Assembly: GCF_000143415.4 (NCBI RefSeq)
Contig: NW_003314448.1
Location: forward strand, 21,231 to 85,230
Direction of reading: 5' to 3'
Source of the DNA: Selaginella moellendorffii
Taxonomy: Eukaryota > Plantae > Lycopodiophyta
DNA length: 64,000 bases
Made by a program: the position numbers and the translations under genes. Positions 1 through 18,300 of the stretch are shown here, piece by piece (the first letter of the stretch is position 1; each line of letters starts with the position of its first letter). The notes under the pieces are model-generated. The model did not search any database and was not told the origin of the DNA. It worked only from the letters and a program-made list of their open reading frames with translations.

Positions 1-56
1 GAGCCAAAATATAAGTAGAGCTGGCGCCGAGCTAGGGTTAGGGTAGACACTAGACG

Positions 57-108
57 ACTACACCCGGCTGATGAGTCCCAAAAAGGACGAAACCGGTCTC
101 GGGTTGTC
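57..108 (+). ncRNA. Type I hammerhead ribozyme (minimal, PLE-associated)
   Basis: CCCGG(63-67)-CUGAUGA(68-74)-GUCC-CAAAAA-GGAC(75-88, helix II)-GAAA(89-92)-C-CG-GUC(96-98)-UCGGG(99-103, pairs with 63-67). Full catalytic core; predicted cleavage after C98; helix III is the short palindrome ACCGGU. Confidence 0.93.
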
Positions 109-135
109 TTTTGTCCTCTCCCTCGCTCACGAATG

Positions 136-1953
136 AATGAAAATTCATTCCCTTGCCTCCTCTACTTGCTCTCGATCATGCCGTCTCGACAACGGCACAC
201 GGAGAATGTGGATTGCACAAAGTGGTGCCGCAATCTCGCCGGATTGCAGCAAAAGCCCTAAGTTGTTTGAGGAGAGAGCTCGAAGGCGCTAGAGAGAGAG
301 TGTGAGAAAGAGGGAGGGAGCGAGCGTCCAGGGCGGCACAAGCATCGCAGACCGCGGCAGCAACACATGGAGCTCGTCTCCCTCCTCTTTCTCCTCTTTT
401 CTCTCGCTCTCTGTCGTTTTTATCGATATCTCCCAAACGGCTGGGAGAAACCTCGATTCCTTCGACAGGGGGCTTCTAGGAGTGTAGATTCTCATCCTCC
501 TAGAAGGCCGCGGCGAGATCTGCCACGGATCTGGAGATCTCGCTGGCCCTAGGTCGCTGCTGTTTTTAGGGTTCTTCGGCGGCGGCTAGGGTTTTTCGGG
601 GCTTAGAGATTTGGAGGAGTGGAGAGGACAGCTAGGAACACCACGGCTGCAGCAGCTGGACGCTCTCCTCTCCTCCTCTTCTTTTTTCGCTTCTCATGGT
701 TTCAAGGTTTTTGGGAGCTCATAACTCCTGAACGGCTTGGAATTTTTCCACAAAAATTCACAGGGGGATAGCTGGGAGGGAGCCTCACACCCTCCCAGAA
801 GCGCAGGCAAAAATTCTTCACGGTCTCAGAGTTCTCACCTGCCCTAATTCGTGGCTAGGGTTAGGGTTCTTGGCTGGCTTTTGCCCTAACTACGGTTAGG
901 GCAGGACTTAGGGTGGCAGTGGGATCTCCGATCTGGCCACTCTAAGTGTCAGGGATCTTCGTTGCATGTGGTTGGCACGGCAGCAACATGGTGGAAACGC
1001 GACGGTTGCTGGTCTCGCAGCTTCGAGTGGGATTTCTCGCCTTAGGTCGGGCCATGCAAGGTGGTGACTGAGGTACGGAGAGCGTGAAGCTGCATGTGTC
1101 GGAAGTTCTTGGCGACTTGAGTCGTGGAAACACGACCAAGTCATGGGAACTTTGTTGACTGGTGGAGAACAGTTCGGGACGACATCCCGACATAGCGAAG
1201 TGTCCGCGGTGGATGGACGTGGAAGACACTATGGGCGCATTTTTGGATCTAGTGACAGGGAAGTGCTGTCACAAAGGGGGCCAGTGGCGGATGGCCGAGT
1301 TGGTTTGCTCGCGGAGGGGATCCCACATGGTTCTTGCTTCAGGGCTAGTCCTTTGAGGAGGTTCGCGGAGGCTTGCAAGTCTTGTGATTGTCGCGATGCC
1401 GGCAACGGGGGCTCGTATATCATTGAAGGGGGCCAGCGCACTTGTCTAGTGTGGGAGGCAAGGTAGCACGCTCTAGTCTAGAGCTGGAGGAGGCTCACAC
1501 CTCGCTTGTTCTACGCCTTGGAGTTTGTTCGCAATGGGCACCGACTTAGTGCTGGAAGTACACTGGGGAGCTTGTGCAGTGGAGTCACCTTGGAGGCGAG
1601 TGACCCATGAGCAACGCCGGGTCATCGTGCTCAAGTTGGACCGCTTGGCTGCGACGACGTCGAGCTAGATCGACATGGTGTTTGTCTGGCTTGTCATCAT
1701 TGTGACCGAGTGGAGGAGTGGCAAGGCGAAGCAGGTGGCTTCAAGCTCCGCGGTGGAGTCACCTGGGAGGTGGACGGCCCAAGAGCAGCGCCGGGCGTTC
1801 GCGCTCATAGTTTCACTAGTTTCTTCGAGAGTGCGCTCTCAATGTTGTTTTGATCCCTTTGGGATTGGGGTAATGTACATATATGTTTAGCAATCTCGCC
1901 GGATTGCAACACCACGGGGTGTCTTTGACCCTAAACGCCTAAACGCGCCTAAA
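136..1953 (+). mobile_element. Distal copy of the 3' non-coding region of the telomeric Penelope-like element
   Basis: Near-identical direct repeat of 7586-9402 (offset ~7450; the small ORFs in both copies translate almost identically). Ends in the same GTCTTTGA-CCCTAAA-CGCCTAAA-CGCGCCTAAA terminus. Confidence 0.85.
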
Positions 1954-2095
1954 CTCTAAACCTAAACCCTAAACCCTAAACCCTAAACGCGCCTAAACCC
2001 TAAACCCTAAACCCTAAACCTAAACCCTAAACCCTAAACCCGTAAACCCTAACCCCTAAACCCTAAACCCTAAACCTAAACCCTAAACCCTAAAA
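1929..2095 (+). repeat. Plant-type telomeric repeat tract (CCCTAAA)n with variants
   Basis: About 20 CCCTAAA/CCTAAA units read directly. Confidence 0.97.
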
Positions 2096-2096
2096 C

Positions 2097-2153
2097 CGCC
2101 GGATTGCAGCACCGCGGGGTGTCTTTGACCCTAAACGCCTAAACGCGCCTAAA
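2097..2153 (+). mobile_element. Extremely 5'-truncated (57 nt) copy of the element 3' terminus
   Basis: CGCCGGATTGCAGCACCGCGGGGTGTCTTTGACCCTAAACGCCTAAACGCGCCTAAA matches 9346-9402 and is embedded between two telomere tracts. Confidence 0.85.
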
Positions 2154-2180
2154 TCCTAAACCCTAAACCCTAAACCCTAA
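2154..2180 (+). repeat. Short telomeric tract capping the 5' end of the intact element
   Basis: TCCTAAA followed by about 3 CCCTAAA units directly before unique sequence. Confidence 0.9.
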
Positions 2181-2284
2181 TCCAGAAAAAGCTCAATCTA
2201 GCTCTTTATGGGACGCCCAAAAAAGGAGCCCTGCACACCAGCACTACCAGCAGAGAATCGGCCCAGAATCTAGGGCTACAAAGA

Positions 2285-2472
2285 ATGGGTGTAACTTAGT
2301 CAAGGATGTCCTGCTCTCAACCTTGACCGTCTGGAGGCTTGAGGGTGGATTTCTTGCACTAGTTCCCTGTGAAGAATTTATGGGTGTAACTCAGAGAAGG
2401 ATCTCCTGCTCTTCTGCTGACCGTCTGGAGGCTTAAGAACAGATTTCTTTCACTAGCTCCCCATGAAGGATG
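2285..2472 (+). repeat. Diverged ~95-bp tandem duplication in the element 5' region
   Basis: Two copies of ATGGGTGTAACT...AAGGAT..CCTGCTCT...GACCGTCTGGAGGCTT...GATTTCTT.CACTAG.TCCC..TGAAG. Confidence 0.75.
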
Positions 2473-2655
2473 CAACGTGGATCTACACTCTCACCAAATG
2501 ACTTCATTATGACTCACCAAATGGCTGAAACCCTTCACCAAATGGCTGATCGTATGTTGCCACGTAGAATTAATCATCCATGTATATATATTTCTTCTTA
2601 GGTATCTCAATCCCTTACACTTTCTGCTCGCTGTGACGGTCTGTGAGTAGTAGGC

Positions 2656-5364
2656 ATGCAAGCTTCTAGCCCTTTTTCTTCATCTTCATCGCCACTTAGT
2701 CATAGTTTAAGTGCTGGAGTGCCCTTGAATCTCATCTGTTCTATCAACGCTGCTGCAGATCAGGAGATACCAACGAATTCCCGGTCCCCCACACCGGAAT
2801 TCTCACCTCCTGAGTCAAGGCAGAACACACACGACACGCTCGTCTTGCCTTCCCAACAGACACTTGTCTTGCCTTCTCAGCGTGCACAAGCTCCTCAATC
2901 TCATCGTGGACTGTGGCCGAATTTCTCTCACCGGGACGTTCGCTCATACTTCATCCGGGACTCTGGTCCAGGACCGATTGAGATTGAAGACACAGCTGCA
3001 ACTTCTGGAGTAATGCATGACCAGTGTTCTCTTCCTCTTATGGCAAATGCTCCTCCATCACCTCCTCACATTGCTTCATCATCTCGTCAAACACCAAATC
3101 CTCCACCATCCAATTCCATTCATGGATCAGCCCCTATTCACGGATTTACACTCTCATCTCGTATCATACCATCTTCTTCCTCCACACCAAATACAACGCT
3201 GTCTTCCATACCAATTACAACGCTTACTACCATACAAACGTCCTGCTCTGCACCAGTTCCAACACCACTACCACGCACTCTACCACCTCAAACGTCAGTT
3301 CCAACACCACTACCACGCACTCTACCACCTCAAACGTCAGTTCCAACACCACTACCACGCACTCTACCACCTCAAACGTCAGTTCCAACACCACTACCAC
3401 GCACTCTACCACCTCAAACGTCAGTATATGCACTCACGACCGAGTCTCCTCCAGCTTCTCCTGAATTCTTGAGGGAACTGGCACTTACAGAGGAACGACA
3501 CTTGGCTGAACGACACTTGGCTTCACGACCTGTCTCAGCACCACTGTCAACGGCTACATGGTCCACTGTAGCATCAGTGACAGATATGCAGCCCACTCTG
3601 CCTCCAGCAACTGCCCCAGTAGCAACTATGCCGCCTAGGAGATCCGTTGTGCCACCTGTGACCACCTCTACATCCCCTATGGCTGTGCCTACAACAAACT
3701 CACTCTCACCACATGCACCAGCATATACACCCATGTCTACGCTTGCATGTACCTCTGTGCTCACAACTACAACCATCCATACACCTACTCCATCGACAAC
3801 TAGCCCTCCTCTCTTTGCTACAACACCTCATACTCCACCAACTTTCTCCATCTCGCCTCCTGTTCCATTAACCTTCTCCACCACACCACCTTTCTCCATG
3901 GCCTCAACTTTACCAACACTCTTTTCATCAACAACTTCAATCCCACCACCTTTTTCATCCCCAGCTGTGCCATCATCTACTCCATTCTCTGGATTGGTAG
4001 ACCTCTTCACAGTGTTGCAGAATAGTGCTGGCATTTCTGCTACTGGAAACACTCTTCCACAGCAGTTGCCACCTTTCCTTGCCCCTGGCAATGCCCTCAC
4101 TAGCTCCTCGACTGAGGGACTTGGTAGGCTTGATGAGGCTCTTTCTGCCATCCTTGAATGCTCGATCAAGGAATTCATGAACGAGCTCAAGTCTCTAAAT
4201 CAAGCTCACAAGGCTGTGAAGAGATTGACTCAGCTCCGTGATAAAAAGCAGTTCCCTCAAGACCTTCGCATTCGTGTGCCAAAGCTTGAGGTGACCTCTC
4301 ACGGTCAGGAACTTCTTGATACCAGCATCAAAGCAATCCACGAACAATACTTGAAGGACCTTCTTGATTCTCTGCTCAAGGCACGAGAGGCTGAGGCTGC
4401 TACCCTTGCGGATCTCATCAACCATGGACTCTCTCAACGTTTTAATGATCGAATGGATGATTTTGTTCACTGTGCTTTGCAGGCTTGTGGCAATGCACAA
4501 CGAGAGGCTGTCACACATACTCTCAATGCCCGCAAGCATCAGTTGATAGCTGAATACCAACGTGCGACTGCAATTGGAGCAGTGGCATATGGAGTTGAGG
4601 AGAGCAAAAAGGAAAATGCTCGCAAGCAAAGGGAAGCTGCAGAGGATGCTGCACGAGCCAAGGCGGAGACACTGCCCAAGGAAGACACTGTTAAGATGCT
4701 TGTCCAGAGCTGCTTTGACAAGATGTGGAAGGAGAGGGAGCGTGGAATTCCGAGACAACACCACGAAGATGCTGGCAGAGGCACCAGATCACAAGGCAAA
4801 CGACAGCAAAGGACGGATACCTCACTCCACATACGTGAAGCAGGCTCTTCAAAGACACGCAAGGTTTCTCTCCCCAGTGGTGAACGTGACGTTACCCATG
4901 GACGGCAGGGAAACGAGCAGGGGCGGAATGTGGTTACTGGGACTCCTCCCACCCATTCCGATGCCCCGGGTTTTTCTTCAAGGGGTCCCTTGCACCGGCA
5001 ATCTCCAACCGTGCTTGGTTCCCAGCCAGCCATGACTGGCAGAGGTGGCCAACGCCAGTCTCGAGGAAACGGTCGACCCCCACGGTCCCAACCGAACTGG
5101 CCAAGCGGCCGAGGGCGCCAGACTACACCACGACCTCCTCCAGCAGCCCAACAACGCCAGCCAACTCAGAACCAGAAACCACCTTCACCTCCCAGAGGAC
5201 AAGAGATGCAGCCCTCACAGCACCACAACAACACCCCACTCCACGAACGAACCCAACGCTATGGCTTGGGAAGAAACTCGCCTCCACAGCAACGCCCGCA
5301 CTCTCCAGTTACGGCAGTGCCTGTGGACAGAAAAGGCAAGGCAAAAGTTTCTGGCTACCTTTGA
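2656..5364 (+). CDS. PLE ORF1 protein, 902 aa: P/S/T-rich N-half, predicted coiled-coil centre, basic R/G/Q-rich tail
   Basis: Long intact ORF with an upstream TATATATA (~2583). Helical/charged segment (IKEFMNELKSLNQAHKAVKRLTQL...EESKKENARKQREAAEDAARAKAE). Lies directly upstream of and overlaps the RT frame. Confidence 0.85.
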   Translation: MQASSPFSSSSSPLSHSLSAGVPLNLICSINAAADQEIPTNSRSPTPEFSPPESRQNTHDTLVLPSQQTLVLPSQRAQAPQSHRGLWPNFSHRDVRSYFIRDSGPGPIEIEDTAATSGVMHDQCSLPLMANAPPSPPHIASSSRQTPNPPPSNSIHGSAPIHGFTLSSRIIPSSSSTPNTTLSSIPITTLTTIQTSCSAPVPTPLPRTLPPQTSVPTPLPRTLPPQTSVPTPLPRTLPPQTSVPTPLPRTLPPQTSVYALTTESPPASPEFLRELALTEERHLAERHLASRPVSAPLSTATWSTVASVTDMQPTLPPATAPVATMPPRRSVVPPVTTSTSPMAVPTTNSLSPHAPAYTPMSTLACTSVLTTTTIHTPTPSTTSPPLFATTPHTPPTFSISPPVPLTFSTTPPFSMASTLPTLFSSTTSIPPPFSSPAVPSSTPFSGLVDLFTVLQNSAGISATGNTLPQQLPPFLAPGNALTSSSTEGLGRLDEALSAILECSIKEFMNELKSLNQAHKAVKRLTQLRDKKQFPQDLRIRVPKLEVTSHGQELLDTSIKAIHEQYLKDLLDSLLKAREAEAATLADLINHGLSQRFNDRMDDFVHCALQACGNAQREAVTHTLNARKHQLIAEYQRATAIGAVAYGVEESKKENARKQREAAEDAARAKAETLPKEDTVKMLVQSCFDKMWKERERGIPRQHHEDAGRGTRSQGKRQQRTDTSLHIREAGSSKTRKVSLPSGERDVTHGRQGNEQGRNVVTGTPPTHSDAPGFSSRGPLHRQSPTVLGSQPAMTGRGGQRQSRGNGRPPRSQPNWPSGRGRQTTPRPPPAAQQRQPTQNQKPPSPPRGQEMQPSQHHNNTPLHERTQRYGLGRNSPPQQRPHSPVTAVPVDRKGKAKVSGYL
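3254..3425 (+). repeat. 42-bp coding tandem repeat x4 (VPTPLPRTLPPQTS)
   Basis: Four perfect copies in ORF1. Confidence 0.95.
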
Positions 5365-7208
5365 TTGCCCCGCATGAAGCTTTACTTCATTTTGCCGGCA
5401 ATCAAAAAGTTTCCCAGCTAGAAAATAGAGTGGAGATTGGTGCTGTTCACAATTTGTCTTCTCGCATGTTGAGTGCCGCTGAAAAGCGCCTCCTTGCTCT
5501 TGGGCTCTCATTCATTCCTAATCCAGTGCCTCTCACGGCCAAAAAGATTATGGAATGCTTAGATGACTTTCAATGCTCAGTCCGTCTTCGTAATTCGTTT
5601 AAGGACAGCAACAGTCTTATACCAGAGTTTCGGGTTCCCAACCCAAACTTTGATCCTCCCCCTGCTTCCTGGCACATGGAGTCACGAGTTGCCCGCATTC
5701 GAGAGCACCTTCTCCAACGTCTTTCCTGTTGTAAAAGACCTCGATCTTTTCTAAGAGGATGGAGACGTGATGCAGTCCTTGCGCTGCGACACGATCATAG
5801 TATTGTGATTAAGCCAGCCGACAAAAACCTTGGCGTAGTTGTTCTGGACCGCACGTGGTACATTCAAGAGGCTATGCGCCAACTCAATGATCCTCTTGTC
5901 TACAAGAGAGTTGAGTCGATTCCACATCAACCCATGCATGAGCGCCTCCTCGAACTTCTCCTGAAGTATAAATCTTGCTCATGGCTGGACAAGAACACAG
6001 CCAAGTACCTCATCACTTTGCCCTCACCTCCACGTAAAGCTTGTTTGTTGTATTTTCTTCCAAAAATACACAAGCAGCCAATTCGTGGGAGACCAATTGC
6101 TAGCTATGTTGGCTACATTTGGGAGCCACTTGCAAAATGGCTCCACCGCCAACTTTTTGGCATTCTCCTCCAACAGGAAACCTTTCTTATGGACTCCCAC
6201 ACTCTCCTTCATGATCTTCATAAACAACAGCTCCCAAAAGACTGCCTCCTCTTCACTTTTGATGTGGAGTCGCTCTACCCGAGCATTTCCACACGTGAAG
6301 GGCTCTATCGCCTCCATAAATTTGTATATAGAAATTTTGGAGATTCGATGCAAGCACGCTTTATCATGGCTGCTGCAGGACTCATCCTTGAACACAATTA
6401 TGTTGAGTTCGATGGGAGTTATTTCCTTCAAATCCGAGGCACTGCTATGGGGTCAAACTTTGCTGTGGTGTATGCTTGCCTTTTTCTTTGTTCCCTCGAG
6501 GACGAATTTAAGGCCACCTCTTCTAAATGGCCAATATATCTTAAGAGATATATTGACGATGGTGTTGGAATTTGGGATGGATCAAAAGAGAGCTTGGAAT
6601 GCTGGTTGGCTAGCTATGGAAGCCTCTGCAATTCTATAAAGATCACCTCAGTGATCTCATTTGAATCTATGGATATTCTAGACATCCATTTTTTCAAAGG
6701 CCCACGTTTTGAGAAATGCAGGTGCCTAGACTCCACCACCTTTCAAAAGCCACTAAATGCATACCAATATCTTCCATGGAACTCAACGCATCCTCGACAC
6801 CAAAAGATTGCCTTCATTCGTGCTGAACTTCGGCGTTACCTCCTACGAGAGAGTAACCCTGAGAGCTTCTGTGCAATTCGCAAGCTTTTCTATACTCGTC
6901 TCCATGCACGTGGATACCCAAGAGCCTTCCTTATTGAAGCTTTCCGGACAATCCATTATACGGACCGAGATAATGTGCTCTACTCTCCATCACGCAAATC
7001 CAGTAGCAATAGTCTACAGGCCCCCCTCATTTTCAAGCTGCCTTATACTCTCCATAGTGCGGCACTTGATGTGGGGAACACCCTAAACCCTAAACAGGTG
7101 ATTTCTGAAGTTCCATCAGACTCACTCCTCAGAGTGATCACATGCTGGACACGGTCCCCAAACCTTGCTTCCCACTTGGTTTCAGCGAGACTCCCACCAT
7201 ATGGATAA
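4890..7208 (+). CDS. Penelope-like reverse transcriptase without endonuclease (frame open from 4890; ORF track start 5361 is a TTG)
   Basis: PLE RT motifs IKPADKNLGVVVL, LYFLPKIHK..IRGRPI, FTFDVESLYPSI, GTAMGSNFA, RYIDD, FQKP...QYLPWNSTHP and RGYP. Protein ends shortly after the thumb with no GIY-YIG motif. Confidence 0.93.
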   Translation, partial: RYPWTAGKRAGAECGYWDSSHPFRCPGFFFKGSLAPAISNRAWFPASHDWQRWPTPVSRKRSTPTVPTELAKRPRAPDYTTTSSSSPTTPANSEPETTFTSQRTRDAALTAPQQHPTPRTNPTLWLGKKLASTATPALSSYGSACGQKRQGKSFWLPLIAPHEALLHFAGNQKVSQLENRVEIGAVHNLSSRMLSAAEKRLLALGLSFIPNPVPLTAKKIMECLDDFQCSVRLRNSFKDSNSLIPEFRVPNPNFDPPPASWHMESRVARIREHLLQRLSCCKRPRSFLRGWRRDAVLALRHDHSIVIKPADKNLGVVVLDRTWYIQEAMRQLNDPLVYKRVESIPHQPMHERLLELLLKYKSCSWLDKNTAKYLITLPSPPRKACLLYFLPKIHKQPIRGRPIASYVGYIWEPLAKWLHRQLFGILLQQETFLMDSHTLLHDLHKQQLPKDCLLFTFDVESLYPSISTREGLYRLHKFVYRNFGDSMQARFIMAAAGLILEHNYVEFDGSYFLQIRGTAMGSNFAVVYACLFLCSLEDEFKATSSKWPIYLKRYIDDGVGIWDGSKESLECWLASYGSLCNSIKITSVISFESMDILDIHFFKGPRFEKCRCLDSTTFQKPLNAYQYLPWNSTHPRHQKIAFIRAELRRYLLRESNPESFCAIRKLFYTRLHARGYPRAFLIEAFRTIHYTDRDNVLYSPSRKSSSNSLQAPLIFKLPYTLHSAALDVGNTLNPKQVISEVPSDSLLRVITCWTRSPNLASHLVSARLPPYG
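4908..4989 (+). promoter_or_regulatory. Predicted -1 programmed ribosomal frameshift signal (slippery heptamer plus H-type pseudoknot)
   Basis: G GGA AAC in the ORF1 frame, just after the last -1-frame stop (4887-4889). 5-nt spacer; stem 4920-4934/4951-4967; loop GGGACUCCU (4939-4947) complementary to AGGGGUCCC (4981-4989). Confidence 0.8.
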
Positions 7209-7227
7209 GCTACCTTGGACTTGCCCA

Positions 7228-7550
7228 AAGCTACCTCTTGCAAACTCAGAGTGGAATATTCCTGGAATATTCTGATGCTTTGAAATATTTTTTGAGGTTA
7301 GCTATTAAACATGATGAGGAACAATTAGGACGTGCTGCATGGCTGATATCCATCACCATCACCGTTCACAATATACTGCTATGAATAAGCTACCTCTTGC
7401 AAAGTCGGAGTGGAATATTCCTGGAATATTCTGATGCTTTGAAATAATTTTTGAGGTTGGCTATTAAACATGATAAGGAACAATTAGGACGTGCTGCATG
7501 GCTGATATCCATCACCATCACCGTTCACAATATACTGCTATGAATAAGCT
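7228..7550 (+). repeat. 159-bp tandem duplication in the 3' UTR of the PLE
   Basis: AAGCTACCTCTTGCAAA... starts at 7228 and again at 7387; few substitutions. Confidence 0.92.
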
Positions 7551-9377
7551 TCACACCACTAAGCTTGTTTATTTCCTGACCACTAAATGAAAATTCACTC
7601 CCTCGCCTCCTCTACTTGCTCTCGATCACGCCGTTTCGACAACGGCACACGGAGAATGTGGATTGCACAAAGTGGTGCCGCGATCTCGCCGGATTGCAAA
7701 AAAGCCCTAAGTTGTTTGAGGAGAGAGCTCGAAGGCGCTAGAGAGAGAGTGTGAGAAAGAGGGAGGGAGCGAGCGTCCAGGGCGGCACAAGCATCGCAGA
7801 CCGCGGCAGCAACACACGGAGCTCGTCTCCCTCCTCTTTCTCCTCTTTTCTCTCGCTCTCTGTCGTTTTTATCGATATCTCCCAAACGGCTGGGAGAAAC
7901 CTCGATTCCTTCGACGGGGGGCTTCTAGGAGTGTAGATTCTCATCCTCCTAGAAGGCCGCGGCGAGATCTGCCACGGATCTGGAGATCTCGCTGGCCCTA
8001 GGTCGCTGCTGTTTTTAGGGTTCTTCGGCGGCGGCTAGGGTTTTTCGGGGCTTAGAGATTTGGAGGAGTGGAGAGGACAGCTAGGAACACCACGGCTGCA
8101 GCAGCTGGACGCTCTCCTCTCCTCCTCTTCTTTTTTCGCTTCTCATGGTTTCAAGTTTTTTGGGAGCTCATAACTCCTGAACGGCTTGGAATTTTTCCAC
8201 AAAAATTCACAGGGGGATAGCTGGGAGGGAGCCTCACACCCTCCCAGAAGCGCAGGCAAAAATTCTTCACGGTCTCAGAGTTCTCACCTGCCCTAATTCG
8301 TGGCTAGGGTTAGGGTTCTTGGCTGGCTTTTGCCCTAACTACGGTTAGGGCAGGACTTAGGGTGGCAGTGGGATCTCCGATCTGGCCACTCTAAGTGTCA
8401 GGGATCTTCGTTGCATGTGGTTGGCACGGCAGCAACATGGTGGAAACGCGACGGTTGCTGGTCTCGCAGCTTCGAGTGGGATTTCTCGCCTTAGGTCGGG
8501 CCATGCAAGGTGGTGACTGAGGTACGGAGAGCGTGAAGCTGCATGTGTCGGAAGTTCTTGGCGACTTGAGTCGTGGAAACACGACCAAGTCATGGGAACT
8601 TTGTTGACTGGTGGAGAACAGTTCGGGACGACATCCCGACATAGCGAAGTGTCCGCGGTGGATGGACGTGGAAGACACTATGGGCGCATTTTTGGATCTA
8701 GTGACAGGGAAGTGCTGTCACAAAGGGGGCCAGTGGCGGATGGCCGAGTTGGTTTGCTCGCGGAGGGGATCCCACATGGTTCTTGCTTCAGGGCTAGTCC
8801 TTTGAGGAGGTTCGCGGAGGCTTGCAAGTCTTGTGATTGTCGCGATGCCGGCAACGGGGGCTCGTATATCATTGAAGGGGGCCAGCGCACTTGTCTAGTG
8901 TGGGAGGCAAGGTAGCACGCTCTAGTCTAGAGCTGGAGGAGGCTCACACCTCGCTTGTTCTACGCCTTGGAGTTTGTTCGCAATGGGCACCGACTTAGTG
9001 CTGGAAGTACACTGGGGAGCTTGTGCAGTGGAGTCACCTTGGAGGCGAGTGACCCATGAGCAACGCCGGGTCATCGTGCTCAAGTTGGACCGCTTGGCTG
9101 CGACGACGTCGAGCTAGATCGACATGGTGTTCGTCTGGCTTGTCATCATTGTGACCGAGTGGAGGAGTGGCAAGGCGAAGCAGGTGGCTTCAAGCTCCGC
9201 GGTGGAGTCACCTGGGAGGTGGACGGCCCAAGAGCAGCGCCGGGCGTTCGCGCTCATAGTTTCACTAGTTTCTTCGAGAGTGCGCTCTCAATGTTGTTTT
9301 GATCCCTTTGGGATTGGGGTAATGTACATATATGTTTAGCGATCTCGCCGGATTGCAGCACCGCGGGGTGTCTTTGA

Positions 9378-9818
<441 letters not shown>

Positions 9819-11064
9819 TGTAAGCAACTAATTTTTCCTAGTCCTAGTCTTTGCCAGAATCGTTGATGACTTTTTGAGGATGGTCTTCAATGTTTTGTTC
9901 GTTGCTTCTACTTGACTGTTGCCTTGAGGATAGTGTCGATAATGATTTTGCGGTAGAAATTGGTGAAGCTAAGGCAAACCTGAATGTCTGACATTGATTG
10001 TGAAGGCTCCCATTCGAGAATAGTCCTAACTTTGGCAGGATTCATTGTGATACCTGTAAGCGACTAATTTTTCCATTTTACTTTAGTCACTTAACCACAC
10101 CTCCGACCACTTGGAGGAGTCTCATTCACCACCTCCATAAGTCTAATTCAGGACTTGGGACTTGTTAGCCCCGAGAATGGCATCTATGCCACTCAATATT
10201 TGCACTTGGTCCAAGTGCTCCATGTGTCCGATCCCATGACCGACACTCAAAGGTACCACCGACATGGCAGCCTGTTATGCTAACGCCATGCCCAATCACC
10301 TTTGCCACACTGGTAGTCCAATACCACTTGCATCACAATCTTGGCTCCCCAAGACTAGGCAATCCATCCATGAGTGGTCATCTCAGATCCACTCCTTAGC
10401 ATCCTTAGGATGCCCACCGACAAGGGGAATAGCCTTCCCCAATATCCCTCTGTCAGTCTCCCCTAAGTCCCTTTCTGCCTCTGACCATGTTTGCCAACAC
10501 TGCCACTGGATCGAGGCCCACAGCCCCGACCACTAAGTCCCACGGTCCTCTGGGACTTCCTCACCACACGACTGTGTCCTTGGTCACTACCCTAGAGGAC
10601 TGCTCCTCTTCCTTTCCACAGTCTGGGCCTTTGGGACAACATTTCGGAACACCGTGGCCTTACGCGAGCCACCTGGGTACTCTCCCCGCCTTCTGCCCTT
10701 GGGTGCTCTAGCCATGGGCTTAGAGCGAGGTTCCGTTGAGCCACGCCTGGTATCCAAGTAGGTAGTGCCACCCACACTTGGACTGGGAGCATCGGCCAGT
10801 CGATCTCCCGGGGGAACTAGAACCGGCTCTTGAACACTTCACCAAGCTACCCCGCTTGTCGGTCCATGTTCACTCTAGTCTTGGACTTCCCAGTGGTCAG
10901 CTCATCACCCAACACTGGGTCTGGCCTTCCTGGGCCAAACTGGCTCCACTGGGCTCCAACCCCCACACTCTCCTTACTATACTTTTGGAACCCCCCGCAG
11001 CCCCCCCCCCCCCCCCCCTGGGGGACGATCGCTTTGGGCTTTCACCCAACTGCCTGTATTAGTA

Positions 11065-11713
11065 TTCGGACTCGGACTCGGGCTCGAACTCGGACTCGGA
11101 CTCGGTCTCGGTCTTGGTTTCGGACTCGGACTCGGTCTCGGTCTCGACTTCGGCCTCGGTCTCGGTCTCGACTTCGGCCTCGGTCTCGGTCTCGACTTCG
11201 GCCTCGGTCTCGGTCTCGACTTCGGCCTCAGTCTCGGTCTCGGTCTCGTGTCCATCTCGGACTCCATCTCGGACTCCATCTCGGGTCCATCTCGGGTCCA
11301 TCTCGGACTCCATCTCGGGTCCATCTCGGGTCCATCTCGGACTCCATCTCGGACTCCATCTTGGGTCCATCTCGGACTCCATCTCGGGTCCATCTCAGAC
11401 TCCATCTCGGGTCCATCTCAGACTCCATCTCGGGTCCATCTCGGGTCCATCTTGGACTCCATCTCGGACTCCATCTCGGGTCCATCTCGGACTCCATCTC
11501 GGGTCCATCTCGGACTCCATCTCGGGTCCATCTCGGACTCCATCTCGGGTCCATCTCGGTTCCATCTCGGACTCCATCTCGGACTCCATCTCGGATCCAT
11601 CTCGGACTCCATCTCGGGTCCATCTCGGACTCCATCTCGGACTCCATCTCGGGTCCATCTCGGGTCCAACTCGGACTCCATCTCGGACTCCATCTTGGGT
11701 CCATCTCGGGTCC
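11065..11713. repeat. Mosaic minisatellite: (TCGGAC/TCGGTC)n followed by (TCCATCTCGGG / TCCATCTCGGAC)n
   Basis: Direct reading; produces repetitive ORFs in all frames. Confidence 0.92.
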
Positions 11714-12012
11714 CTTTTGGAGCCTCGCTTATTGCTCGTTTCGTGCTCATTCCTCGAGCACTTCGTTAGGAGTTCCACTCCCGCTCTCGACCTTTCAAGT
11801 TGGAGCTTTTGGCCCAAACGTGTTACACTCGTTTGGCTTTCGCTTTGGCCACTACCACGTGGCACCCTTCCGGCTCCACTTTGGGGCCTAGGGATTTTGT
11901 GTCTCACAACTCCACCACCCATAGACGAAGTTCGATGTCCTCATCAAACGGTAAACCCTTTTATAAAGTAACACCCATATGTATTACCGTTTCCATCCTT
12001 GGCCCCCGGCCA

Positions 12013-12142
12013 ATATTTGTCTATGGTTTGACATTGAAGGCTCACCATGCCTTCTCCATATTTGTCAATGGTTTGACATTGAAGGCTCACCATACCTTCT
12101 CCATATTCGTCAATGGTTTGACACCAAAGGCTCACCATGCCC
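12013..12142. repeat. 45-bp tandem repeat x3
   Basis: ATATTTGTCAATGGTTTGACATTGAAGGCTCACCATGCCTTCTCC-like units. Confidence 0.85.
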
Positions 12143-14747
12143 TACCCATCCTCTAAGGAGGGTAGTCTCTCCAACTTAGAGACTAATTGAACCACAGGTA
12201 GTGGTTCTCTCCTTTTATTGATTTAGTTCTCGCTAAACCTCTTAGAGACCCTTCTCTAAGTCAATACCACTACTCCTTCTCGAGTAGTCTCAATTTCCAT
12301 TGATTGAACGTTTGCACCTTGGAACTTTTACTCTTTGACTTCTGGAAGTCAATTCCCTAGGTGTCTCCAACACCTTGCATTGCACATATTGTGCAACTCC
12401 ACTCCCTCTTCCTAGGAAGTTCTCTACTTGAGGGCACCATCATCCTCTCTTTTATTTCGTGCCACCTTGGGCACTAAGTTCCAGTTATCATACTTTGTGC
12501 TAGGGCTGTCCATGGCCCTATCATTTGGCTACCTTACCGCTACCTCCCTCGGAACTTCCCCTTTCGCCAAATCGGAGCAATTCCGAATCCATTCTTGGAA
12601 ACTCGTTTCCTTTCCCGCAATTTGTTAGCATCCAACACATTAGTGTTCCTCGCCTAACTTTGCCACTTGGATTCCTTCCAAGGGATTCCACGGCCCTATC
12701 TTGGCCACTCATCTTTTACTCCTATCCGTTGATTGTTGCACCAAGCAACACCGAATCTCTACCTCCCTCCTTGAGGTATTCTTTTGATTCCATAGCAAAG
12801 GCTCGGCTTTGCCAAAACTAGGGTGTTCACCCCTAGTAAGTCTCTTTAGCATTTTCTGTTGTGGGCTCTATCCATGGCCCAACTTTGTGACCCTCTCATG
12901 GGTCTCTTATAGAGACTACTTTCTTGGACACACTATGCCATCGCAATGACATAGCTCATTTCCCTAAGGTGCTTTTCCCCACTTGGTCACCTTGACCAAG
13001 CCACACCATCCTCAATAGTTCAAATCAACACTTTAAACTAAGGACCTTATTCCTTACCCCAAACAAGGACCTTGTCCTTATTTAGCCACAAGATCACCTA
13101 GTGATCTCACCTCGGCACCTTAACAGGTTTGCTAATAGGTACTAGGTCTTCCAGACCTTTAACTTGTTAACTACGACCCCAGGGGCATCCCCCACACTTG
13201 GCGGTGCGCCCAAGCCAGCCCTTCTGGCCAAGGGTTCATAGCAACTGAGACTGAGTGTCCCCATCTCATTCACCACATCCTTGGTGCCACTTGCACCAAA
13301 GTGTTCAAGTTAGATATGCTGAGCCACACTAAGCAATCTAACCGTGCATCACGACTCCGAGGCATCCCTCGCTTGGCGGTGTGCCCAAACCAGTCTCCAC
13401 ATTGAGAGTCCATGACCACCGAAAAATGAGTGTCCTCATATTCCAAACCATCACCACGCCCTAGTGAGTTGGGACTCGAACCCAAGCACTAGAGGGTCGG
13501 GACTCGAACCCAACCTCCATATATGGGCGGCATCACCCAGGATGCCTAGCGTGACTCCCCACGCCGGTGCACCAACTTTTACTCAAAGCGCGCTATAGAT
13601 CACAGCTTAGGAACCTAGTTCCTCCACACTGTCAAGTCCTCTCACTTGACAAGTCTGTGATCATGCATGGACTCCTCCACGCTTGGCCCCATGGCCCACC
13701 CTTTTTGAAGTTGTCACCTTCAACTAGGGTATTTATTCCCCTGACTTGCCAATCTCGCTTGGCAAGTCCTCTAACCACTGTAACATGGTTCTTGCACAAG
13801 CATGAAAGTCCTTGACCATCGACTTTCGTTCAAAGCCCTCTCTTTGAACACTCGGGAACTACTTCCCTAACCTTGATAGCCTTGCCTCATGGCAAGCTTC
13901 AAGACCACGCTTCTGCTGCGCCACTCTGATTTCGCGCATTCTATGAACCATTTACGCTTGGCCTTTCTAGGTACTAAGCTACCTAAAATCATCTTTGGGA
14001 ACCTTGAAGGAACTCTGTCCCTTAGCTTGCTAAGGCCTCCCTTTTTACAAACTTTCCAATTGCCACATAGTCTAACATGGACAATTCCATATTTTAGACT
14101 CTCCACGGCATCACGGTTGCTAGCAGCAACAACCCTCAAGCCCCCACTTGATTCTCCCCTCCCAGCTGGCATAACCAACCTTGGTTATGCCCTTCGATTC
14201 TTATGGTTCGGTTCTATCCCCTTACTTCTTGCTTTTGGCTTCGCACCTTTCCTTTGGTCCTCTAGACCAGGAGGATAGCTTTGCACTTTCTATCATGCCT
14301 TAGCAAGTATTCCTAGGGATGAACCTACCCAATAGCCCAGGGAGTGGTTCCTCAATCCGGGTATGCTCACCTTATAATCCCACACACTGGGATTATATTG
14401 TTGTTTATGGGTCTTTACATACCCGTCACTAGCCTTGCCAAAATTCCATTTTTGGCTTTGTCCAACTTGGGTAGACAGTCTTCTCCTGTCTCTGCAACCT
14501 TGGACATTTGGATAGCACCTTCTATCCATCATTCGCTAGGGACTTAATCCCTTGGGCCTTATCCATTGCCTTCGCAACATCAAACACCACCTTCTTGTGT
14601 TCTAGAGTGTTCGGGTGTCCCAATGATGGCTTTCTTGACAATGAGTATTTCCTTTTATGACATTGACTTACTATATCGCAACACAAGCAACTTATCCCCC
14701 GTAAGGGTATATCCAACTTCCCTATGCTATTAAGAAGTCTTGGGTAG

Positions 14748-15342
14748 TGTAAGCTCCTGAGTTTTGGACTTCCCGGGAGGTCACCCAGCCCAGTACTATT
14801 CAAACCCAAGGACGCTTAACCCCAAATATCCCAAGACCCTTAACCGATTGGAAAAGGGGGTGCACTCTTATTCATGGGCCCTTTCCCTCTATATTTGAAC
14901 CCCATGGATCGTCTCTCAAGTCGTTCCCTTTGGTTGCTTACAATCCACCACGCTTCCCTGCAAGTTCACGCCCTCGTGAACGGAAGCTGAGAGCCGCAGC
15001 TCTCCCGAGAGCCCCGCTCTCTTGACACCCTACCCCTCGGGTCGAGCCCAGCGGGAGCAAACTGGACCAGCCAGATGTCAATCAACATGTGGTGCGATTC
15101 CCCTAGCCAACCAACAGAGTCGGACCCGAGACCGCTCCGATACCAAATGTAAACTCCTGAGTTTTGGACTTCCCGGGAGGTCACCCAGCCCAGTACTATT
15201 CAAACCCAAGGACGCTTAACCCCAAATATCCCAAGACCCTTAACCGATTGGAAAAGGGGGTGCACTCTTATTCATGGGCCCTTTCCCTCTATATTTGAAC
15301 CCCATGGATCGTCTCTCAAGTCGTTCCCTTTGGTTGCTTACA
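14748..15342 (-). mobile_element. Complete Cassandra-type TRIM with 5S rRNA-like LTRs
   Basis: Two 195-bp LTRs (14748-14942, 15148-15342) that appear to differ at one base, TG..CA ends, TSD GGTAG. PBS TGGTATCGGAGC and PPT GGGGAAGCGTGGTGGA on the minus strand, 205-bp non-coding interior. LTR contains GTTAAGCGTCCTTGGG...TAGTACTGGGCTGGGTGACCTCCCGGGAAGTCC, resembling the 5S internal control region. Confidence 0.93.
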
Positions 15343-18300
15343 GGTAGCTACCTTCTACCCGTTTAACTAGTTATTCTGCACCTCTTGCTTAGTTGCCTCA
15401 TAGTTGTCAAGTCCTACAACTCATTGCTTGGTGCTTCCACACCTCCATCATTATCTGGGTCACCACACTCCAATTGCATGCTCTATAGCTTAGGCTATGC
15501 CATTCCCATTTCCATTGGGATTCCTTTGGCAAAGGGTTCTCATGAACCCACGAACATAGCCTCAAGGTATCACACCTTGGCACATTTGGTGTCTCCACAC
15601 CATCGGCTCCACGAGCCTACCTCTATGACACTTCCCCTTTGTGTCTAAGTCTTTGCCAAGACTAACACCGCTCTTTCTCATGCCAACCATCCGTTAGCAT
15701 TGCACCATAGAGGTCACACACAACTTTGTGTCAAAGTTGTTTTCTTCTGGGAACACCTTTCCCATAACTTTAACATGGCACATTTTGCCATCGATGAGAT
15801 ACCCTCTGTTCTCATCCTTGGATCCTATGATCCCCCCCATCCTTCGTGGGGTACAACACACCTCAGTCCAAATGCTTCCATCAGTCCTTTTAGGACCATT
15901 CCTTGACTCTACTTGAGTCATCCAGCAGTTTTGGACTTGGTTAATCCACAGACCCGTAAGGTCCCACTTGTGAGGCACTAGCTCACTGGATTACACTTCC
16001 TGCATTCCTGTCCTACTCAGAAGGACTATTTTCACAAGTGTTACTAAACCCTGTAAGCGACTAATTTTTCCATTTTACTTTAGTCACTTAACCACACCTC
16101 CGACCACTTGGAGGAGTCTCATTCACCACCTCCATAAGTCCAATTCAGGACTTGGGACTTGCTAGCCCCGAGAATGGCATCTATGCAACTCAACATTTGC
16201 ACTTGGTCCAAGTGCTCCATGTGTTTGATCCCATGACCGACACTCAAAGGTACCACCGACATGGCAGCCTGTTATGCTAACGCCATGCCCAATCACCTTT
16301 GCCACACTGGTAGTCCAATACCACTTGCATCACAATCTTGGCTCCCCAAGACTAGGCAATCCATCCGTGAGTGGTCATCTCAGATCCACTCCTTAGCATC
16401 CTTAGGATGCCCACCGACAAGGGGAATAGCCTTCCCCAATATCCCTCTGTCAGTCTCCCCTAAGTCCCTTTCTGCCTCTGACCGTGTTTGCCAACACTGC
16501 CACTGGATCGAGGCCCACAGCCCCGACCACTAAGTCCCACGGTCCTCTGGGACTTCCTCACCACACAACTGTGTCCTTGGTCACTACCCCAGAGGACTGC
16601 TCCTCTTCCTTTCCACAGTCTGGGCCTTTGGGACAACATTTCGGAACACCGTGGCCTTACGCGAGCCACCTGGGTACTCTCCCCGCCTTCCGCCCTTGGG
16701 TGCTCTAGCCATGGGCTTAGAGCGAGGTTCCGTTGAGCCACGCCTGGTATCCAAGTAGGTAGTGCCACCCACACTTGGACTGGGAGCATCGGCCAGTCGA
16801 TCTCCCGGGGGAACTAGAACCGGCTCTTGAACACTTCACCAAGCTACCCCGCTTGTCGGTCCGTGTTCACTCTAGTCTTGGATTTCCTAGTGGTCAGCTC
16901 ATCACCCAACACTGGGTCTGGCCTTCCTGGGAGGATTTGAGATGACCACTCACGGATGGATTGCCTAGTCTTGGGGAGCCAAAACTGTGATGCAAGTGGT
17001 ATTCGACTACCAGTGTGGCAAAGGTGATTGGGCATGGCGTTAGCATAACAGGCTGCCATGTCGGTGGTACCTTTGAGTGTCGGTCATGAGATCGGACACG
17101 TGGAGCACTTGGACTAAGTGCAAATGTTGAGTGGCATAGATGCCATTCTCGGGGCTAGCAAGTCCCAAGTCCTTAATTGGACTTATGGAGGTGGTGAATG
17201 AGACTCCTCCAAGTGGTCGGAGGTGTGGTTAAGTGACTAAAATAAAATGGAAAAATTAGTCGCTTACAATTTGGTATCGGAGCTGTTCCTTAATCCGACT
17301 TTTATTGGTGCTCAAGTATATCACCATTGATATTGGCATCGGAAGGTCCTAGGAGTGGGCCTATCCTTGAGGAGTAGCACGTCGAGAGGACATGGCTCTC
17401 CACTCGAGTTCATACATGAACTTGGGCGCGATGTGGTGGATAGAAAAAGGGGCCAGTAAGGGAACAACTTTGGGATTTTGGGAACAGTATATGGTTTTCC
17501 TCAGAGAGTTGAGGATGTGACCCAGATGAGCGTTTGACTTAGCAAACTGGCTAATGTAGTTGTGGTAAACAACTACAGTTGGGATCACGGGAAAGAGAAA
17601 GACTCCAAAGCAATAAAGGAGTCACAAAATTATCCTCATATAGTTGAGGTTGGTGCTCATAAATGTGAGACCAGAAGTAATGACCATGGGAGGTCAAATA
17701 CGGAAGAGGACTCAAGTCCTTGAAATGGTAACCAGGGCTACCTTTAATAAATGCTGGAACAACCCAAGGGCAGAAGGCGGGGAGATTACCCAAGTGGCTC
17801 GCGTAAGGCCACGGTGTTCCAAAATGTTGTCCCAAAGGCCCAGACTGTGGAAAGGAAGAGGAGCAGTCCTCTGGGGTAGTGACCAAGGACACAGTCGTGT
17901 GGTGAGGAAGTCCCAGAGGACCGTGGGACTTAGTGGTCGGGCCTGTGAACCTCGATCCAGTGGCAGTGTTGGCAAACACGGTCAGAGGCAGAAAGGGACT
18001 TAGGGGAGACTGACAGAGGGATATTGGGGAAGGCTATTCCCCTTGTCGGTGGGCATCCTAAAGATGCTAAGGAGTGGATCTGAGATGACCACTCACGGAT
18101 GGATTGCCTAGTCTTGGGGAGCCAAGATTGTGATGCAAGTGGTATTCGACTACCAGTGTGGCAAAGGTGATTGGGCATGGCCTTAGCATAATAGGCTGCC
18201 ATGTCGGTGGTACCTTTGAGTGTCGGTCATGGGATCGGACACATGGAGCACTTGGACCAAGTGCAAATATTGAGTGGCATAGATGCCATTCTCGGGGCTA

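Follow-up and report, generated by a model that had tools for sequence, protein, structure and literature searches.

A canonical type I hammerhead ribozyme motif in the 3' terminal region of a telomere-associated PLE of Selaginella moellendorffii

The stretch of S. moellendorffii DNA analysed here (64,000 nucleotides, referred to as the window) carries, near its start, a hammerhead motif that is confirmed from its sequence as genuine. By its sequence features, the motif is a member of the canonical type I class and not of the minimal form. We consider it likely that this is the standard dimer-gated hammerhead of the telomere-attaching, endonuclease-less Penelope-like elements (PLEs) of this species, through which single-unit RNA would stay whole and multi-unit read-through RNA would be trimmed to permuted monomers, possibly circularising.

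Hammerheads of this kind are already known. Canonical type I hammerheads with tertiary-contact bases were reported in 2014 from the terminal repeats of S. moellendorffii telomeric PLEs (Cervera and De la Peña 2014; PMC4209133, Fig. 3A), and the model of dimers and circles for PLE hammerheads was published in the same paper. Its available text separates the S. moellendorffii canonical motifs from the minimal animal motifs, presents the Selaginella motif together with those of schistosomes and human and reports it without a cleavage assay (PMC4209133). The role of PLE hammerheads in vivo is still open (PMC7761336). The present locus offers a test case in which natural variants occur together, namely the native 170-nt tail, its counterpart carrying a 1.66-kb passenger, and a unit whose RT is intact but which has no ribozyme.

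The hammerhead motif and its class

The coordinates of the motif and of the elements around it are given in Table 1. Family A and family B denote two S. moellendorffii PLE RT families distinguished in this analysis. Sequence upstream of the window was taken from scaffold GL377752.1 of assembly GCA_000143415.2 (L001), which is 100% identical to window 1-17208 and extends 4,535 nt further upstream.

Table 1. Features of the hammerhead motif and of its surroundings in the window
Feature	Position	Strand	Remarks
Canonical type I hammerhead ribozyme, predicted	52-109	+	Cut site after C98
Hammerhead catalytic core	68-74; 89-91	+	CUGAUGA; GAA (letters of the window)
Hammerhead helix II	75-78/85-88	+	4 bp; loop CAAAAA 79-84; begins G75-C88 (G10.1-C11.1)
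Hammerhead helix I	62-67/99-104	+	6 bp, open-ended
Hammerhead distal stem	52-56/105-109	+	5 bp, beyond 5-nt bulge 57-61; bulge ends UAC (59-61)
Palindrome ACCGGU (helix III)	92-97	+	1-2 bp in monomer; 6-bp duplex between two molecules
Cleavage triplet GUC (NUH)	96-98	+	C17 = C98; predicted cut 98/99
End of family-A PLE 3' UTR	1-51	+	UTR and RT C-terminal remnant continue upstream (L001 ~3273-4535)
Native 170-nt family-A tail, 5' part	99-248	+	Includes first 19-bp target copy 230-248
Non-coding insert, 1,660 nt	249-1908	+	Counts second 19-bp target copy 1890-1908
Tail end with element-encoded variant telomere-like docking repeats	1909-1953	+	Repeats begin at 1929
Telomeric tract between element units	1954-2094	+	C-rich strand
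Family-B PLE body	2184-7577	+	5' region, ORF1 2656-5364, endonuclease-less RT 5361-7208, 3' UTR
Second family-A tail with the same insert	7578-9404	+	No hammerhead in unit; 19-bp duplication 7680-7698/9339-9357

An Infernal search against Rfam, which had been proposed as a check, matched the motif to Hammerhead_HH9 (RF02275) over the full length of the model (41.5 bits, E value 3.6e-7). This score falls under the HH9 gathering score of 52, thus the motif is HH9-like but is not filed as HH9. The bare core pattern is not significant, with 0.57 occurrences expected per window; the full descriptor (helix II of at least 4 bp and helix I of at least 6 bp) was not found once in 200 windows simulated with matching dinucleotide composition. 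The letters themselves, the HH9 match and the empty simulated windows bear out the complete type I core that was originally claimed, and the predicted location of the cut site of this telomeric-PLE type I hammerhead, 98/99, is agreed. Helix I had been placed at 63-67/99-103, where it is present but one base pair short of its full extent.

Every sequence feature of a canonical type I hammerhead was found, i.e. the core, the NUH triplet, helices I and II, the contact bases and a palindromic helix III. The UAC at 59-61 and the loop CAAAAA align to the HH9 consensus at the loop 1 and loop 2 contact bases, which suggests a contact between the two loops. The label 'minimal' in the original prediction is therefore not retained: minimal PLE hammerheads (min-HHR) have no loop contacts, a long helix II (7-8 bp), a short helix I and an extra base at 9.1, whereas the window motif combines contact bases with a 4-bp helix II, a 6-bp helix I and no extra base. 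It also differs from a non-LTR retrozyme, a short non-coding tandem unit with a hammerhead at either end that is expressed as circular RNA, in that one hammerhead lies within a PLE 3' UTR; on the further S. moellendorffii scaffold L002, hammerheads are separated by 4.2-6.8 kb, and searches with the core pattern and the descriptor across the 64-kb window and 4.5 kb upstream gave no second hammerhead.

Compared with the motif reported in 2014, that of the window agrees in species, element class, position and architecture (helices I-III and tertiary-contact bases), as matched by the description in the text and not letter by letter; neither the nested insert nor the hammerhead-less chimera present in the window is mentioned in the available text of that paper (PMC4209133). 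The points shared with HH9 and with the canonical type I motif of Schistosoma mansoni are the full-length model match, the internal loop with UAC and the loop CAAAAA. Helix III of the window motif does not have the 5-nt loop of its HH9 counterpart, and the score remains below the gathering score of the family. The minimal hammerheads of animal PLEs and the 3' hammerheads of Terminons likewise are of type I, lie in a PLE terminal repeat and are thought to act as dimers (PMC4209133, PMC6431247). The Terminon hammerhead is located upstream of reverse-complement telomeric repeats and immediately adjacent to them, in contrast to the native gap of 170 nt in Selaginella (PMC6431247).

Conservation and the palindromic helix III

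Conservation of the core in other genomic copies had been set beforehand as a test that could refute the motif. Two further S. moellendorffii scaffolds (L002 and L003) together hold four more hammerheads, and all four share the 54-nt core (window 55-108) without a single difference, so that the motif withstands this test. Two of them belong to family A and depart from the window only outside the core. The other two lie downstream of a family-B RT that is 98-99% identical to the RT of the window, and their flanks differ in letters yet rebuild the distal stem; family-A and family-B RTs are ~68% identical in DNA.

The search was extended to the loci of seven more distant RT relatives (36-45% identity). 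A type I hammerhead was located near the RT in six of the seven, at about one per tandem unit, a density seen in L009, L012 and L013 as well as in L002; no convincing hammerhead was found at the seventh locus (L015), whose contig goes no further than the RT stop. None of the seven distinct motifs has lost the catalytic core or the NUH triplet. One relative, L009 (GCA_030272615.1; protein named Cryptomeria japonica), shows RT units of 4.3 kb in tandem; every unit has a hammerhead with the palindrome ACAUGU, and there is no telomeric tract within the 9.7 kb examined. Loci L012-L014 hold a metagenomic endonuclease-less PLE in tandem arrays with TTTAGGG-type tracts and a hammerhead ~550 nt upstream of the docking repeats, so that the layout of the Selaginella elements recurs in another organism.

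A 6-nt palindrome is kept as helix III in all seven distinct PLE hammerheads, in five variants (ACCGGU in the window and ACUAGU, ACAUGU, AUGCAU or AUCGAU in relatives). In the alignment of the seven motifs, two-sided changes occur in 9 of the 12 pairs and 88% of the alignment cells are paired, against 30-49% in slid controls; as the structure was derived from the same sequences and the descriptor required helices I and II, the counts for these two helices lean upward. The palindrome was not required by the descriptor, and 21 of 21 helix III cells are paired, including the central pair of adjacent bases. Such a central pair, being made of adjacent bases, can form only between two molecules. The proposal that the palindromic helix III reflects cleavage as a dimer is thus supported by the covarying palindromes and by the fully paired helix III cells, and cleavage is, judging from these comparisons, probably dimer-dependent. 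For plant-type PLE hammerheads, the five covarying palindromes speak, on comparative grounds, for cleavage as a dimer.

Folding predictions also suggest an off-state of the monomer. Its minimum-energy fold is inactive (-19.4 kcal/mol, versus -8.5 for the active monomer), with 64-67 paired to 93-96, and the pair probability of helix I in the monomer is 0.02-0.24. The double hammerhead, at -37.3 kcal/mol, is near the energy of two inactive monomers; the predicted dimer minimum is lower still (-41.9), tertiary contacts being outside the folding model. A motif of the same build from the axolotl gave 6% cleavage as a monomer and cleaved far better as a dimer (PMC7229834). This motif, HHR_Amex1, and the amphibian satellite-retrozyme type I motifs share with the window motif a helix III of 1 bp with a palindromic tetraloop, loop 1-loop 2 contacts and, as we infer for Selaginella, dependence on dimers. 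They differ in that the amphibian motifs lie in 330-nt non-coding tandem repeats and that of the window in an RT-coding telomeric element.

Host element, nested insert and neighbouring chimera

Upstream of the window, the family-A RT C-terminal remnant (L001 ~3273-3487, + strand) is followed by a 1.1-kb 3' UTR and then by the hammerhead. The family-A RT is interrupted by a minus-strand Gypsy LTR element that ends at ~L001 3272, and in-frame stops occur in the family-A RT remnants examined. Hence the ribozyme is on the sense strand of a PLE copy that is both defective and interrupted, within its 3' terminal region. The original prediction had placed it on the sense strand of the element chain, which agrees with RT-homologous sequence being found on the + strand both upstream and downstream.

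The structural features of telomere-associated endonuclease-deficient PLEs were found. A domain search of the RT at 5361-7208 returned RVT_1 only, with no GIY-YIG match; the tracts on the + strand are C-rich and the sense strand points away from the chromosome end; the PLE 3' ends carry reverse-complement telomeric repeats, and telomeric tracts separate the units and cap their 5' ends. The S. moellendorffii elements have been listed as Coprina (PMC13159263). The ORF1 and RT frames overlap (window 5340-5364) and the RT frame is open well upstream, as expected of a -1 frameshift fusion. Two telomeric repeats lie inside the RT coding sequence of both families (window 7080-7093; L002 348-362), and one copy on L002 is 5'-truncated and telomere-capped exactly at such repeats. 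The 3' UTRs of family A (L001 3500-4330) and family B (window 7228-7550) consist of diverged tandem repeats with a homologous unit in common (score 65; 0 of 300 shuffles).

The ribozyme had been described as lying, unusually, ~1.8 kb upstream of the annealing 3' end. Taken literally the distance stands, as the first docking repeat begins 1,830 nt from the cut in the window copy, but 1,660 nt of this are insert and the spacing is no peculiarity of the ribozyme. Two copies of a 19-bp sequence, at 230-248 and 1890-1908, are 1,660 nt from each other, and the duplication recurs at 7680-7698 and 9339-9357, while three sites on L002 carry the 19-bp target once and no insert. Subtracting the insert leaves 170 nt as the native spacing of the window copy, which is that of the insert-free family-A copies (n = 2); window 136-248 is 100% and 99% identical to two insert-free L002 copies. 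In family B the spacing is 166-167 nt. The 1.8-kb spacing is therefore a property of the nested insert. The distance is not fixed across the group, since ~550 nt separate the cut site from the telomeric docking repeats in the metagenomic relative L014.

The two copies of the insert (249-1908 and 7699-9357) are more than 99% identical, non-coding, and have the same 19-bp target, which lies in the terminal hairpin of the PLE. The target alleles flanking them are A/A at the first and G/G at the second, and both alleles occur at empty sites. This pattern fits two separate insertions, although the base just after the duplication follows no such pattern. A collapsed assembly is an unlikely explanation of the two window tails, which differ at ~14 scattered sites over 1.85 kb in addition to their target alleles. 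Within L002 8724-9015, a 5' telomere-capped piece of ~240 nt (8724-8961) joins the PLE tail at the target position of the insert; its last 40-odd nt resemble the 3' end of the insert by eye, as they might in a truncated copy, but the overall alignment score of 58 is no higher than in shuffled sequences (maximum 62). A purine/pyrimidine hairpin inside the insert (window 304-393, minus strand) gave a weak MIR156 match of 31 bits, versus a gathering score of 62, which is probably compositional.

The neighbouring RT-intact unit, 2184-9404, is a chimera of family B up to 7577 followed by a family-A tail with the insert, and the descriptor search found no hammerhead in it. The family-A tail is entered ~30-37 nt past the cut site of that family, and the final 490 nt of the UTR, the hammerhead and the tail of family B are all missing from the unit. 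This arrangement was seen once, and its B/A junction (window 7570-7590) lies near the counterpart of a small hairpin at window 131-150. We considered whether the 159-bp repeats in the UTR of family B (7209-7585) contain a decayed hammerhead and rejected the idea (local score 22, p = 0.11); true family-B copies, furthermore, hold an intact motif ~490 nt beyond the end of the chimera's UTR.

Proposed mechanism and alternative readings

In the mechanism we favour, which is the simplest account and the one already published (PMC4209133), the ribozyme belongs to the 3' terminal repeat and has a native distance of 170 nt to the downstream repeats that would dock on the telomere G-overhang. The monomer would be mostly off, with helix III unable to close and the palindrome mispairing with the 5' arm of helix I, and an isolated element RNA would stay whole and be copied from the telomere end through the ribozyme. 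Where two hammerheads meet, either in two units of one read-through transcript or in two RNAs, a 6-bp palindrome duplex would form and both would cut after C98. The products would be permuted unit-length RNAs comprising the tail, the telomeric tract and the ORF1-RT and UTR of the next element; their 5'-OH and cyclic-phosphate ends may allow ligation into circles and copying beyond unit length. The 1.66-kb passenger would only lengthen the 3' product of the window copy. Of this scheme, the motif, its conservation among copies, the covarying palindromes, the insert and the native spacing are observed, whereas dimer cleavage, the monomer off-state (from folding only), read-through transcription and circularisation are what we infer. 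Sequencing runs that contain the stretch were found, and none of them is recorded as RNA. Because the next unit carries ORF1 and RT, a read-through RNA cut at 98/99 would be coding, unless it ended at the telomeric tract. As no other hammerhead lies in the 64 kb or the 4.5 kb upstream, a partner would have to be located far upstream or act in trans.

Cutting would part the ORFs from the docking repeats, yet the motif is intact and continuous in each of the five copies that extend as far as it, and the templates must therefore have been uncut or re-ligated. This bears on an unlikely alternative, in which cleavage frees the 3' piece (the 170-nt tail with or without passenger; in the window 99-1953, the non-coding RNA of the original prediction) as a non-coding template that is copied by RT onto chromosome ends, in the manner of a telomerase RNA or a SINE. 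Many short tail copies do lie between telomeric tracts; however, the five short telomere-capped ones begin 112-157 nt downstream of the cut and none at the cut itself, which ordinary 5' truncation explains, and no transcript end is known at 1953. The A/B switch of the chimera, only ~30-37 nt from the cut site, is in favour of such a template, although the junction is not at nt 99. An extension in which RT, copying the free 3' product, jumped from near its cut 5' end onto the mRNA of the other family and so produced the hammerhead-less chimera 2184-9404 is similarly doubtful; if true, the ribozyme would serve two ends, the making of telomeric filler and the exchange of tails among PLE families.

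Less probable again is that the fold is mainly structural or protein-binding and presents the docking repeats, with cleavage auxiliary. A structural role has been proposed for rotifer Terminons and telomeric PLEs (PMC6431247), and the 166-170 nt spacing is held in two diverged families. Against this, the docking repeats are not adjacent to the hammerhead of the window, the units with a spacing of 1,830 nt and one hammerhead-less unit still end in telomeric tracts, the distance in L014 is much longer, and what is kept in every distinct motif is the catalytic core with its NUH triplet. That the ribozyme is a dispensable passenger of the PLE is very improbable: an RT-intact unit without it exists in the window, and Naiad and most Chlamys PLEs thrive without a hammerhead, with parasitism having been raised (PMC8557442), but the motif is unchanged between two diverged families and shows covariation in six more PLE families, and the hammerhead-less unit may be a dead end.

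Other features were noted further along the window. Two 195-bp repeats lie 400 nt apart (14748-15342), and each gave a partial match to 5S rRNA that scores under the gathering threshold; with a third copy at 61821-62016, near the window end, they are presumably of the Cassandra-type TRIM kind. A cytochrome P450 coding piece at 55436-56620 represents an ordinary host gene.
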